A stretch of DNA of 64,000 nt from Bugula neritina (GCA_964035545.1 OZ037765.1:3038001-3102000); one strand, 5' to 3'. Shown: positions 18,114 to 64,000, numbered from the stretch's first letter. Numbers and translations: made by a program. The notes: a model not told the origin generated them from the letters alone.

Positions 18114-21100
18114 ATGCTCCGATTGGAAGCTACATTGGCTTGCTTGCTCATTTTTATAGGAGGTAAGACCTGTCAATTTATTGCAGAATGGCATAAATCA
18201 ATACAAAATTATATTGAAAAAACTGATTACATCCACAAAGTATTTTTGTTAAAATGTACAAAGTAACTGGTATATCTAACCTATTAACTACTCTGTATAA
18301 TGCATTAGATTCTTCAGCTTACAGTTCCATTTGGAATATGAACAGTACATCAGATTTGTGTTGTACAGACCTAAATGTATCTCTTGCATATATTATGTCA
18401 CGTGCAAACCTTTGCTTAATAATATGTTTTAGACAAAACCTATAATAAGCTAAAATTTTGCTGTAGCTTTTAGTGCGCTAAATCAATTTTCACTTGACAT
18501 TTGTGCTTTTTTCACTTTTGGAGGCATACAAATGAAATTGCAGCATTATGTTTCATAAAAGATTGACAAGAAAAGTTTGATATTTTTTGTCTCAAAGAAC
18601 CATAGTCTAACAGCAACATGTGCAAATTCTGTAAGTTCTGTAAGTAAGTGCAAATTCTGCAAATTCCATAGGATGCTGTGAGCCTAACACACGCTCCGTT
18701 AACTATTAGTAGATACAACTGTTGTTGTTAACCCAACTGAAACATTTTAGCTACCCATGTTTCTGCATTTCCTTACCTGGAGGCACTGGACGAAGATGGT
18801 ATTGGAGTAATGCACCCCAGAGACGTGGTTTTGGGAACAATAGGAAAACTCAGGTGCACATTTGATGAGAAATTGGTTATCACGGAGTCTTCAATGATTT
18901 TTATAAGAATAAGAACAAAAGAACATGGAGCCAGTCAATTCTCGACAGCAGTATGTAAATATTATATAAGAGTATATATATATATATATATATATATATA
19001 TATATATATATATATATATATATATATATATATATATATATATATATATATATATATATATATATATATATATATATACTAATATATAGTATATATATAT
19101 ACTATATAACTCACCAGAAACTATCTATCACTCACTACTCTCTCGATCCACACACCACCACACACACACTACAGCACTGCGACGATCACACACACTCACA
19201 CACACCACTACTACTCAACACAGTCCACACGACTCCCACAACAACACCCACACACACCCTACTCAACTACACTACTACCAACACTACTACACTCACTCTA
19301 CTATACTATACTCTATACTGTACTACTACTAGCTATATAACAAGCTACTATTACTCTGTATCACTCACACTACTATCATATACTCTCTACTACTCACTAT
19401 ATATACCGTACTATATATGTACTATTATTGTATATAATATACACTACAGTCTCTATACGCTTTATATAATCAACCATATATATTTATGACTTGTGTATAG
19501 TCTTTATACACCCCCCTCCAGAGCCCCTCCATCCATCCCACTTCTCATGGGTACAAGCGTTTTACACCTCAAGGAAACAAATCATTCAAAGCTGAAGTCT
19601 TTGGATCTAACTGTGAAAAATCTTCGTGTGAATTTGCTTTTGTTTCCACTCGTCATACCCCTCAGGACATTGATTGTCAGTTCTTTATGGTCACCGCCTT
19701 GGCAAAGCAAACTACCAAAACAACAGCAACTTTTCTTAGTAAGTTTGCCTAGCACTGTGTCATTTATTCAGCTATATACTGCATACTACGAAATTCTCTA
19801 GTTTTGTTGTTCTAATATATTTAATAGGGAAGCTATGTTGGTAATAATTACTTGGTATGCATTATGTCGTGAAGATGGCTAAAAGAGGTTTGGTCTAAAA
19901 CTATGAACAATTTTTAGCATAAATGAGGGAGATACTTATTTGCAATACACTAAAATTTCTTTTACTATTTTCCAGCTTTCTCGCTTGTTTGGAATCTAAT
20001 TGCTTGTTATCAGCAATTTTTAAAAATTCATTCTATCAGCCAAAATTGCTAACAAATAAATTCTATAAGTTTACAACAAATGTATTTTTATATTTCAAAC
20101 AAGTTTATAAATTTCATGTAAATGTAGATTTAAATTTTCTGTAAATGTAAAACTCAATATGATTAATCACAGCCTATAATATTTAGTAAACCTTTTTTGC
20201 AATTTTATACAGTCAATTTAAAGAAATACACAATATTTTTGTTATGCCATGTTTATTCTTGATCATCATAGAAAAAATGACATATTTTGAAGTTCTTTAC
20301 ACTCAATGCTATAAAAAATATTTAAAATCATACACTTTTATACAAGAATTACTGTTTTGTAGTTAAACCATCAAAAGTAGTTCTAGAGTATGATGACGAA
20401 AGCTCAACTCTGAGATGTATAAGCCCGCTGTCGATACCACCTGCGACGCTGACGTTGAATTCATCTGAAATAAAAATAGACTATTCTGAGCTCAAAATCA
20501 GTCCACCAATCAGCACCATTACAAAGAAAACGGCTTCTAAAAGTGAAATTGTTTGGGAAGGAGTTTCCAAAGAAGATGCATCAAAGATTTGGTGCGAAGC
20601 AAATCATATTCTTCTGAAAGATAATTTAGTAGCCAGAGATTTGCGGAAACCTGTGAAATTAGCCATAAAAGTAGCCAGAAGTGAGTTCTGTTTTATTATA
20701 TTGGCCTTTCAAAAGGCTTTGTAAAAATTTTAAAATGATGTCATAGTTTCTTTTTGTTATCTTAAAAGGTGTTCAGTCATGTAGTATTTCTAGTTAAGGC
20801 AGAGCTTTGGGAAAATGTTCCCCTGGCATGAATCAAACCTAAGCTGCAAACTTGAAACTTTAGCTACCCATTTCACTATGAAGGCCACTAGGTTTTTCAC
20901 AGCGCCGCAAATACCTTTAATGATTTTTACTGGCATAAAGATTTTGCATACTCTGTAAAATCATATTGTACTATGTTATAGTATATATTGAAGTAAGTAC
21001 TGTTGAAAATAGAGTTAATCAGGAGATACATAAATTTATGCTAATCTTCAAAATTGTTATCTTTTCGATACATAATAATATTTAATTAATAAAGAAAATT

Positions 21101-21736
21101 GTGCCTGCACAAAGCAATTTTTAAAACTTTTAATAATTGATGCAGAAAGCATTTTATTCCAGAGCAGAAGTTTGGGTTTCATTCATATAGTGCTGAATAG
21201 TCGAAAGCTTTAAAAAGGTGCAGATTGTTGGTACTTCTTGTACAGTAGTGGAAAAGTAATCACAAGATATAGCCTCTATCTCTCTGAGAACATTTTTTTG
21301 TAAGGAGGTAAATAAGTTTTTTCTGTTGTGCAAAATGAAAGTCATACTACCTATATGCCCTTTCTAACATCACCCGAGATTTTTACTGGCAGTCAAACGC
21401 TACTGATGTGGTGCTTACTAAGTCAGCAAACTATAAACTACTAGGCGACGCCTACTCTTTTAGCACCACGATATATCTTATTAGTGTAACATGAATTTGA
21501 AAAAGATGTGATTGAATAAAAAAAATTGACTAATAAAATAATTAAAATTGATAGGTATTTCTGGAGAAAACACTTTAGAAGCTGACAGCAAGTTATCTTC
21601 CCCTCTCACCATTGCCATATTTGTTCTTGCCGGGTTGAGCATAGTATTAGTCATAATAGCTGTAGCTCAGGCTATACATATTAGAAGTATGAAGAACATC
21701 CCACCAAAGCCAAGCAATAGAAAGCCACCAAAATAA
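18114..21736 (+). CDS. Ig-array gene A: type I membrane protein with two Ig-like domains (about 328 aa)
   Basis: Exons 18114-18162 (signal [16 protein letters not shown]), 18751-18950 and 19501-19738 (split D1, 4 Cys), 20363-20680 (D2: LRC..IWCEANH), 21555-21736 (TM and short tail). Total 987 nt. The 5' part of exon 3 borders low-quality sequence. Confidence 0.75.
18973..19078. repeat. (TA)n microsatellite
   Basis: Pure TA run; others at about 55698-55758, 60783-60823 and 61076-61237. Confidence 0.97.
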
Positions 21737-61753: not shown

Positions 61754-62595
61754 TTGCACATTTAAGTCATGTACTAATATTTGCTTGTGTAGTATGCAAA
61801 ATATTGAATTTAAAGAAATAAAACAGTTGCTAGTGTTATATCATGAAATTTTGAATTTCAATATCATTAATAATTATTGGCTGCGGTCTCTTAGGCTTGG
61901 TCATGTGACGCAATTACTATGGTAATGATAGCACAATAAAGAGGAAAATTCCAAGAATTGTCTTGTATATAACTTCTGAAATATTGCATTGCCTTGCATT
62001 GTTTGGACAACAAGCTAACACTACCAAGTTATATGCTATGCAGATCGATGCTTGACTTAACTCTACTCATAAATTGATCTACATATAAGCGGTTCTTGGA
62101 TTGATATTTCACTTTGGATGCATTGTAAGTCACTATGTAGTCAGCTTGAAGTAAGTGAATAAAATTTTTAATATTTATTAAATATTATAATTAGCCCATA
62201 AAATAAAAAATTGTTGAAAAATGTAAAAAATGCTTTCAAACAATGTTTTGCTAACTAGCTATTCATCATAACACAACTACTGGCAAGTATTTTAACAATA
62301 ATAATTATATTAATAGTTTCATTGCTCCAATATATTATTCTAATTTATTTATCCATTTATTTATTGCTTTTATAATAAATGATAAAAAAAGCAGCTCAGC
62401 TTTTTCTATTTGGAAGCAAATGCTCATTTCAAAAGCTATACTATTATAAGCCTTATATATGTAGGAGACATTGGCTATAAAAGCAAAATACAAAGCGGTC
62501 CTAATTTGATTCAAACTGTTTTATTAGACTGAGGACAAAATTATGTACTCTAACAAGATAAAATAAAATGGAAAAATACACAAACATCCAACAAC

Positions 62596-64000
62596 ATGGC
62601 TTCTTCTAAGTTAATATCTGAACGTTGGAACAACCTGATAATGCACAGCTTTTCTTCATGCATGACATTAGTATTGTTGTGCTGGGTTGAGTGGGGTGAG
62701 TAATATTAATTTTTATACAATTAATTGCATCCTTTTATTACTACTTATTATTATTTTATTGTTTCAAAATATTAAAAAATTTGGGACTCTTGTGGCTTCT
62801 AAAATATTAGTGCGCTTTACAGTTATAGTTAAATCTATAATGTAATATGACATCTACTTATGGAAACTATACACCAGCTATAATGCGAGTTTGGAAAGCT
62901 TGTTGAATAATTAGAGCTATACTTATATTATCATAGCTATGTTAGCTACACTATGTTTTATACATGCAATATATTATGGTTTTAGCTACTACAAAATAGC
63001 TAACTGTTTAGACTGTTATATAAACCCAGCATTTACTTCGATGTATTCACTTTTTCTCTAAAAGTTTGCTCTTTTTTTCAGACTGCGATAATAAACATGC
63101 ATATAATAAAACGCAACAGTTATCTTGCATTATTTTTCCTAATAAAAATTACATTACGCTTTGGTTATATTATTAATAATATTAAAATTTGATTTTACAG
63201 TTTGTTAGCAGTTGTCTACCCATATATCGAAAATGAACATAAGCAGACAACTCCCAACAATGAAGTGAAATTAAATTGTCTTTTAGGAAGTGCTGAAGTT
63301 CTTTCCTCATCAATAACGGTGTATGACAGCAGCTCCAATAGTCCCCTTTCTTCACCTGCACTTGTAGCGCAAAACACGAATATCGATATACAATGTAGAG
63401 CTACCTTTTCTCAGGATACTATTGGTCGATCATGGTCCAATCAAATGCACTATAAGATAGGATTGACAGTTGACTTTCCAGTGGTAAGTTGTATTCTTTT
63501 GGTAAATGCAATTCATACAACAGACGAATTTCAGTCTCTTGCAGTGTTAACTTCATGTGAAAAAATTATAAGAAATTTTTACTCAAAACTAAAAGTTGCA
63601 TATTTCTGCAGTCTCTAACTCATCACAAAATTGTATTATTATATAAAAACAAGAAAAATCATAAATTATGATTTATGCATGAGACATTTACCAGTTGGTA
63701 GTTGAAATATCATGTAAAATTGACATAATTGGCTAAGAACAAGTATTTGTTCTAGTTATATTATAGCATATCATGAACTGATTTGAAAAAAGTCATTAGA
63801 ATTATATTATTATACAATTTTAGACAAATTGTTCTGGTAGCCATGATGACGACATGAAGGTGAAACATGAATCAGACTATAACTACATTCTACCCTATGG
63901 ACTGACGTGTGGCTATAACAGAATGACAGCAAAGCTCAAGGTCACGGCATCACCTTCATCAGAAGTTAGATGTTTGTGGAGTCTCGACAACACTAACTAC
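62596..64000 (+). CDS. Ig-array gene G (5' part; continues beyond the window)
   Basis: Signal exon 62596-62695 (ATG could be 62641); D1a 63287-63483 (197 nt, DIQC..RSW); D1b from 63824 (C..C..VRCLW). Confidence 0.8.

Follow-up and report, generated by a model that had tools for sequence, protein, structure and literature searches.

Nectins, nectin-like molecules (Necl/CADM), and PVR/CD155 are type I membrane proteins in which a V-set immunoglobulin (Ig) domain, D1, is followed by two C2- or I-type Ig domains. Nectins end in a C-terminal afadin-binding PDZ motif, and Necl/CADM proteins carry a juxtamembrane FERM motif and a type II PDZ motif. In the vertebrate paired Ig receptors, gene conversion keeps the N-terminal ligand-binding domain near-identical between proteins that differ in the rest of their sequence, tail included, an ITIM in some being opposed to a charged transmembrane residue for adaptor pairing in others. 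Bryozoans are colonial animals with kin-biased settlement and, in some species, colony fusion, and Bugula neritina houses a vertically transmitted symbiont that makes bryostatins; to our knowledge, no recognition or adhesion receptor family has been characterized so far in the Bryozoa. The Alr genes of the colonial invertebrate Hydractinia encode, in tandem, type I proteins of the Ig superfamily (IgSF) with up to three Ig domains (fewer in some members), an Fn3-like membrane-proximal domain, and diverse tails, many of which carry immunoreceptor tyrosine-based activation or inhibitory motifs (ITAM or ITIM); their domain 1 is V-set-like and lacks the Cys-Trp-Cys core (PMC9546547). Alr genes and pseudogenes together number about 41, and Alr1 and Alr2 are highly polymorphic. 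Here we analyze a 64,000-nucleotide stretch of the B. neritina genome (GCA_964035545.1, OZ037765.1:3038001-3102000), referred to in full as the window, in which seven genes, A to G, encode putative nectin-like type I membrane proteins, together with an eighth gene, H, located just past the window end. We think it fairly probable that the encoded proteins serve a lineage-specific function in cell-surface recognition or adhesion through D1, with H signaling or being trafficked and the effectively tail-less A to G acting as its partners or modulators.

Gene Array and Exon Plan

A scan for stop-to-stop frames and splice sites placed genes A to G head to tail on the plus strand between 18.1 and 64 kb of the window, as had been predicted from the DNA by an earlier reading (the original prediction), and all of the exons then described were found. 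That prediction counted seven family members, to which gene H must be added, in convergent orientation on the minus strand. Exon borders are AG/GT throughout, save for a GC donor common to E and F after D1b. The models were checked exon by exon, with frames obtained by arithmetic on exon lengths and phases, and every model is in frame, with 420 to 441 codons in B to F. The common plan is as follows, lengths being in nucleotides (nt) and TM denoting transmembrane.

Signal exon: 43-67 nt, phase 1 out, in B to F and H
D1a: 197 nt in B, D, E, F, and G, 206 in C, 185 in H; phase 1 in, 0 out
D1b: 205-214 nt; phase 0 in, 1 out
D2: 327-342 nt in B to F and H, 318 in A; phase 1 on both sides
D3a: 191 nt, 188 in F; phase 1 in, 0 out
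D3b: 100 nt; phase 0 in, 1 out
Micro-exon (stalk of 9-13 residues): 27-39 nt; phase 1 on both sides
TM/tail exon: terminal exon in A to G; phase 1 in

The individual genes, in window coordinates continued past position 64,000 where needed, are given below.

Gene A, 18114-21736, plus strand, 305 codons (tentative): signal 18114-18162; D1a 18751-18950 and D1b 19558-19738 (both tentative); D2 20363-20680; TM about 21567-21733, with a 22-residue tail
Gene B, 24341-31365, plus strand, full eight-exon plan, 426 codons: signal 24341-24395; D1a 25334-25530; D1b 26189-26402; D2 27299-27628; D3a 27879-28069; D3b 28673-28772; micro-exon 29385-29423; TM 31211-31362
Gene C, 33793-38520, plus strand, full plan, 440 codons: signal 33793-33847; D1a 34093-34298 (206 nt); D1b 34680-34884; D2 35357-35686; D3a 36198-36388; D3b 37333-37432; micro-exon 38114-38149; TM 38321-38517
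Gene D, 41213-46198, plus strand, full plan, 430 codons: signal 41213-41270; D1a 41789-41985; D1b 42685-42889; D2 43752-44093; D3a 44291-44481; D3b 44867-44966; micro-exon 45554-45583 (tentative); TM 46029-46195
Gene E, 47519-52268, plus strand, full plan, 441 codons: signal 47519-47585; D1a 47778-47974; D1b 48401-48611 (GC donor); D2 49238-49564; D3a 50025-50215; D3b 51070-51169; micro-exon 51726-51761; TM 52072-52265
Gene F, 57571-61753, plus strand, full plan, 420 codons: signal 57571-57637; D1a 57836-58032; D1b 58468-58678 (GC donor); D2 59027-59362; D3a 60166-60353 (188 nt); D3b 60538-60637; micro-exon 61283-61309 (tentative); TM 61617-61750
Gene G, 62641 to beyond 64000, plus strand, 207 codons: signal 62641-62695; D1a 63287-63483; D1b 63824-64037; TM 64676-64830 (past the window end), with an 18-residue tail
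Gene H, 79612-65881, minus strand: common plan with extra tail exons 72335-72412 and 65881-66081

Two genes depart from the plan by domain loss. Gene A was predicted to lack D3 and the micro-exon, and a search of the gene for D3 found none, the micro-exon being likewise absent from the model; its D2 matches the family D2 profile with an E value of 2e-25 and Pfam C2-set_2 and Ig_3 weakly. Gene G had been taken to be merely truncated by the window edge, but it consists of signal, D1, and TM exons only: D1b ends at 64037, and D2 and D3, searched for between and after the D1b and TM exons, were not found. The D1 of G is nearest to that of H. In B, C, and E, the peptide encoded by the micro-exon (36-39 nt) is conserved, the candidates in D and F being weaker. 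In the bryozoan Watersipora subatra, two isoforms differ by a 19-residue Ser/Thr insert exactly after D3, in support of an optional stalk micro-exon in the family. An alternative tandem acceptor is possible at 48398 for D1b of gene E.

Among annotated B. neritina proteins, the H ortholog is KAF6028462.1, an independently made NCBI gene model (P0004 in our set; "hypothetical protein EB796_013220 [Bugula neritina]"). Its splice junctions are those of the H model, except at the D3b donor, where it reads through into the intron and then reaches a stop. The draft gene models to which it belongs were produced by AUGUSTUS with transcriptome hints (PMC7576161). The exons are not chance open frames, for they are conserved among paralogs and orthologs and the ratio of nonsynonymous to synonymous substitution rates (dN/dS) is below 1 wherever dS can be estimated. 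A tblastn map of all exon peptides gave a clean array with no stray pseudo-exons. Low-complexity or minisatellite arrays occur at 24720-25260 (upstream of D1a of B), 42100-42650 (in the D1a-D1b intron of D), and 57030-57270 (upstream of F), and these yield long spurious open frames in several reading frames.

Domain Folds, Tails, and Comparison with Known Systems

D2 is a C2-set Ig domain, scoring 23.6 (C), 25.2 (D), and 28.3 bits (E) with Pfam C2-set_2 against a cutoff of 21; with Pfam Ig_3 it scores 21-30 bits, the cutoff of 30 being reached only in KAF6028462.1. D1 and D3 were folded from KAF6028462.1 rather than from the window's own genes, using domain-only alignments with exon translations as the D1 rows. 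The AlphaFold model of D1 (predicted local distance difference test score [pLDDT] 78, predicted template modeling score 0.72) matched V-set domains in Foldseek with probability 1.0 and E values of about 1e-4 (VHH, CTLA-4, CD28, and Nav beta subunits), and VIA-align gave Z scores of 10-13 and root-mean-square deviations of 2.4-2.7 over 105-117 residues with myelin P0, T cell receptor V domains, Lutheran, nectin-3, Necl-1/2, and SYG-1. On this model, D1 is a V-set Ig domain. The D3 model (pLDDT 73) gave borderline Z scores of 7-8.7 and Foldseek E values of 2e-3 or weaker, nearly all of its top matches being I/C2-type Ig domains (Dscam, VEGFR-3, contactin, MDGA1, and CEACAM5); D3 thus modeled appears Ig-like, less firmly so than D1 or D2. 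A Cys...Trp...Tyr-x-Cys pattern is kept in all three domains, the core Cys and Trp are present in every domain of B to H, and D1 of B to H retains the B-strand Cys, the C-strand Trp, and a late Cys-x-Trp. The original description of the products as IgSF surface proteins therefore holds; they are type I membrane proteins, with D1 a V-set domain by fold, D2 a C2-set domain by Pfam, and D3 Ig-like. Complex prediction with two copies of the H-ortholog D1 scored 0.00 and gave no answer, which is no evidence either way.

Each gene encodes one strong TM helix. The tails of A to G are 13-27 residues long and mutually unrelated; a regular-expression scan of the tails found neither ITAM nor ITIM, and no charged residue is present in the TM helices. 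H, on the other hand, has a cytoplasmic tail of ~150 residues that contains a PPxY motif and is rich in tyrosine and acidic residues at its end. The last exon of H is 50% identical over 68 residues to the C terminus of the Watersipora protein, and PPxY is found in both.

The nectin/Necl/PVR proteins are the closest kind, having the same type I topology and the same order of a V-set D1 and two C2/I-type Ig domains. Z scores of about 10 were obtained when the D1 model was superposed on D1 of nectin-3, Necl-1, and Necl-2, and the nearest solved sequences are PVR/CD155, CADM4, SYG-2, and MDGA1, although the sequence matches are weak (PVR/CD155 D2-D3 against Watersipora P0027, E 8e-4; CADM4 against the D2 profile, E 0.0056). 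Language-model neighbors were nectin-3-like, nectin-2, Fasciclin-3, and MUC18, nectin-like clusters being the commonest, and no hit carried a nectin-specific Pfam or NCBI name. In contrast to nectins and Necls, a phase-0 intron here interrupts both D1 and D3, and the genes lie in a single tandem cluster. The tails, read directly, lack the nectin and Necl motifs: H and its Watersipora counterpart end in Gly-Ala-x-Cys after PPxY, and the PPxY- and Tyr-rich tail of H appears bryozoan-specific, the others being reduced to their 13-27 residues.

The resemblance to Hydractinia Alr is one of genomic style only: both are tandem sets of type I IgSF genes in a colonial invertebrate, and their products begin with a V-set-like domain, have three Ig domains at most (fewer in some members), and vary in their tails (PMC9546547). 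It differs in having 8 genes and, in place of the Fn3-like membrane-proximal domain, a micro-exon stalk, and in lacking ITAM and ITIM (PMC9546547); sequence homology between Alr and this family was not demonstrated. The paired receptors (SIRP, KIR, LILR, and PILR) find a parallel in pairs of genes that share D1, namely E and F, B and C, and a long- and short-tailed pair in Watersipora, but ITIM and a charged TM residue are absent here, E and F are both short-tailed, and no homology is evident past the Ig fold. Recognizable sequence membership of Dpr/DIP, Beat/Side, or IgLON was not found, with Pfam I-set scores of 15-16 bits (below cutoff) and none of these families among the PDB hits or the named language-model neighbors.

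Family Size and Distribution

When the entire 216-Mb AT-rich genome was searched with family profiles, D2 gave seven matches and D3a six, all in the cluster, and D1 gave 14 in the cluster plus one at a distance of 1.64 Mb. The distant match is a truncated copy derived from G on the same chromosome (4742529-4743086, minus strand), beside a reverse-transcriptase-like frame; its first 26 D1a residues are 96% identical to those of G, and its D1b is 83% identical with a disrupted start.

Of 1.84 billion proteins searched with the D2 profile, only 179 matched at E values up to 1e-3. Among those of the top hits that were looked up, near-full-length single-domain matches came only from B. neritina, W. 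subatra, and environmental contigs, other hits being mostly short generic matches in giant multi-Ig proteins. The Watersipora relatives are annotated as "uncharacterized protein" (XP_067941084 and XP_067941078). Word-based searches with KAF6028462.1, Watersipora P0027, and the tail of Watersipora P0151 retrieved only the queries themselves and Watersipora proteins, including one added paralog, and a scan of metagenomes with an alignment of the D2 domains of E, F, and H returned no related loci. In Watersipora, a short-tailed D1-D3-TM paralog precedes the long-tailed gene in tandem, more copies of the D1a, D1b, and D2 exons lie upstream, and the D1a/D1b split is conserved. Within the 90-kb model of the short-tailed paralog, a D2-like exon (contig L009, 70754-71027) matches in two frames, looks frameshifted, and is skipped by the RefSeq model. 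Judged by these sequence searches, the family appears to be restricted to bryozoans, to occupy a single locus in Bugula, and to belong to no named family, in agreement with the lineage-specific origin that had been proposed; no orthologs in other phyla were found.

Orthologs, Selection, and Gene Conversion

The type-S draft contig carrying the H ortholog runs colinear to 66.8-89.5 kb, the DNA being 86-87% identical, and because identity is no higher than this along a colinear contig, the window represents a sibling taxon of the type-S draft and not the same strain. The host is thus a Bugula of the B. neritina complex, and it is a colonial animal. The exons of H are 81-100% identical to those of the B. 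neritina ortholog. Contig L008, orthologous to A, is 90% identical over 19525-20988 and 73-75% elsewhere, its D2 being 97% identical, and contigs L005 and L006, orthologous to E, are 83-85% identical. Across the Bugula samples, ortholog dS is 0.14-0.26, apart from the C lineage: contig L007 (JGI sample 3300003318) is 76% identical in DNA to window positions 34988-37129 with a dS of 0.36, which makes it twice as distant (D2 dS in the same sample is 0.16 for E and 0.26 for A), yet it clearly groups with the C lineage and not with B. The contig represents either a deep allelic lineage or sibling taxa that differ in copy number, the copy being missing here. DNA contig runs over gene E, which showed no splice joints, gave one sequence that matches the assembly (X1) and two (X2 and X3) that cover the 5′ module only, with 90-95% identity, as would fit a sibling taxon. 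Positions 47788/47789 in E appeared heterozygous, but the second bases proved to be those of the paralogous gene F and not alleles.

The proteins had been described as widely diverged with unrelated tails. The tails are indeed unrelated, but divergence is not uniform, for two tracts of near-identity were found between neighbors.

E/F conversion tract, 47778-48611 in E (partner in F, 57836-58678), plus strand: spans exactly D1
B/C conversion tract, 25383-25530 in B (partner in D1a of C, 34093-34298), plus strand: ~150 bp, about 96% identical

Between E and F, identity is 98.0% in D1a, 96.5% in intron 2, and 98.1% in D1b, against 77-82% in the 5′ flank, signal exon, and intron 1 and an unalignable 49% after D1b; dS is 0.023 in D1 versus 1.28 in D2. 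Outside the B/C tract, identity falls to 60-75% in the adjacent D1a and is 74-86% in other exons. The Watersipora pair P0151/P0169 has a nearly identical D1b. From these sequence comparisons, D1 is homogenized between neighbors, apparently by gene conversion, and not diversified.

Between orthologs, dN/dS is 0.05 for D2 of A, 0-0.5 for the exons of H, and 0.37-0.59 for E. Paralog values are mostly 0.2-0.4 with dS >0.6, rising to 0.8 in D3 of C and D and in D1 of E and F, the latter high value resting on three or four differences. Values stay below 1 in every pair and domain with an estimable dS, and the fastest domain is not consistently D1.

Neighboring Genes and Alternative Explanations

The family is preceded in the window by a gene for a protein with Death and tandem TIR domains, and the same gene order was found on two European Nucleotide Archive (ENA) contigs.

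Death/tandem-TIR gene, ending at 17657, plus strand: upstream neighbor, outside the family
Contig L010: TIR gene 162-2137; Ig gene 3493-10361
Contig L011: TIR gene 3708-6698; Ig gene 8015-14947

The last exon of the TIR gene (17079-17654) matches Pfam TIR_2 with an E value of 1.3e-18, a second TIR-like region lies at 15652-16349, and 460 bp separate the end of the gene from the start of gene A. On L010 and L011, an H-like three-Ig gene with a Watersipora-type tail lies ~1.4 kb downstream of a Death-TIR-TIR gene and has the same orientation. The taxon of these contigs, presumably a bryozoan, is far diverged (D2 is 44% identical, the TIR exon 53%), and because the same order is kept at this much greater distance, the TIR-Ig linkage predates the Bugula expansion. 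Neither a TIR gene nor a major facilitator superfamily (MFS) gene is present in the 110 kb that precede the Watersipora gene. H is flanked by a single-exon gene for an MFS-type transporter of 616 residues (83293-85140 in continued coordinates, minus strand), and the same neighbor (Pfam MFS_1) lies beside the H ortholog in the B. neritina draft, so that synteny is conserved on that side. A long terminal repeat retrotransposon occupies 153-3931 (minus strand), with a 1,023-residue pol frame (protease, reverse transcriptase, RNase H, integrase, and DUF7047) and a zinc knuckle in its gag frame.

The TIR linkage raises the alternative that the genes encode innate-immune or symbiont-sensing receptors working with the Death-TIR-TIR neighbor, the short- and long-tailed copies sharing D1 in the manner of paired receptors. 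It is favored by the position of the TIR gene directly upstream and its retention before an H-like gene in a far-diverged lineage, by homogenization of D1 in E/F, B/C, and P0151/P0169, three pairs whose copies differ in body or tail, and by copy content that seems to differ among sibling taxa, given the C-lineage dS of 0.36 versus 0.14-0.26. Gene order kept between relatives can, however, be plain synteny, and the linkage does not extend to the 110 kb searched in Watersipora; the products lack ITIM, ITAM, and a charged TM residue, and dN/dS stays below 1. We regard this explanation as unlikely.

Pseudogenes drift toward a dN/dS of 1 and gain stop codons. A mostly inert duplication, in which H alone works and A to G are unexpressed or decaying copies, would fit with models of A to G drawn from DNA, with H as the only member whose ortholog is among annotated B. 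neritina proteins, with the loss of domains from A and G, and with the broken G fragment elsewhere on the chromosome. However, open frames, splice sites, and phases are intact in all eight models, no domain of B to H has lost its core Cys and Trp, and the A, C, and E orthologs have dN/dS values of 0.05-0.6 and the paralogs mostly of 0.2-0.4 despite dS >0.6, which makes inert duplication quite improbable. It is very doubtful, too, that H and its Death-TIR-TIR neighbor constitute a recognition-signaling pair conserved in bryozoans, for which the Bugula-specific, short-tailed A to G would be a polymorphic set of ligands or decoys in kin, self, or symbiont recognition, with D1 variants made and spread by exon-scale conversion.

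Allorecognition or kin recognition of the Hydractinia Alr kind, in which a polymorphic, homophilic D1 would set compatibility or kin-biased settlement, was among the roles put forward in the original prediction. In its favor are the colonial host, the clustering in tandem of type I IgSF genes whose D1 is V-set, recombination or conversion at exon scale in D1 (which can also create alleles), and the uneven divergence over the cluster in one foreign sample (73-90%). B. neritina is reported to recognize kin when settling (Keough 1984, cited in PMC10078279), and the draft-genome paper mentions weak Alr1-like similarities, without a locus (PMC7576161). Several results nevertheless point away from an Alr-like histocompatibility role, which we consider highly improbable: B. 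neritina colonies are reported not to fuse (PMC10078279), the family numbers only eight, D1 is homogenized between neighbors, the TM segments carry no charged residue, dN/dS is below 1 wherever estimable with D1 not consistently fastest, the A, E, and H orthologs are well conserved between sibling taxa (97% for D2 of A; 81-100% per exon for H, against 86-87% in surrounding DNA), and the proteins keep the Cys-Trp-Cys core that Alr D1 lacks while having no Fn3-like stalk, ITAM, or ITIM (PMC9546547).

Proposed Role and Significance

Returning to recognition or adhesion through D1, we propose that the family consists of bryozoan-restricted, nectin-like type I glycoproteins in which a signal peptide and the V-set D1 are followed by the C2-set D2, a small D3 of Ig-like type, a short stalk, a single TM helix, and a tail, and that it would have been expanded by tandem duplication at one Bugula locus. 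The long-tailed H would be the conserved, ancestral receptor and founder, and A to G would be younger copies that kept the ectodomain plan with short tails devoid of known signaling motifs, some having lost domains (A without D3, G with D1 only). By analogy with nectins, Necls, and other V-C2-C2 adhesion molecules, the membrane-distal V-set D1 may bind a partner in trans or in cis; H would transduce a signal or be trafficked through its tail, and the tail-less copies may act as ligands, coreceptors, or decoys. Repeated gene conversion would keep D1 alike in some neighbors while D2, D3, TM, and tail diverge.

Several points weigh against this proposal. Binding through D1, and the existence of a partner, are argued purely by analogy; the similarity to nectins and Necls is borderline, and the PDZ and FERM motifs are missing from the tails. 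The gene models derive from DNA, the sequencing runs for the genome being DNA contigs only, and no annotated protein orthologous to A to F turned up in the B. neritina draft proteome. The D1 of A has no recognizable similarity to D1 of the other genes.

As a kind of finding, this is an ordinary, lineage-specific IgSF expansion. Its value would lie in the domain-precise conversion of the outermost Ig domain, seen here in a tractable family of eight genes at a single locus with one putative long-tailed founder. The locus is also linked to a TIR gene in two diverged lineages, and the conserved Death-TIR-TIR neighbor is the most interesting lead.

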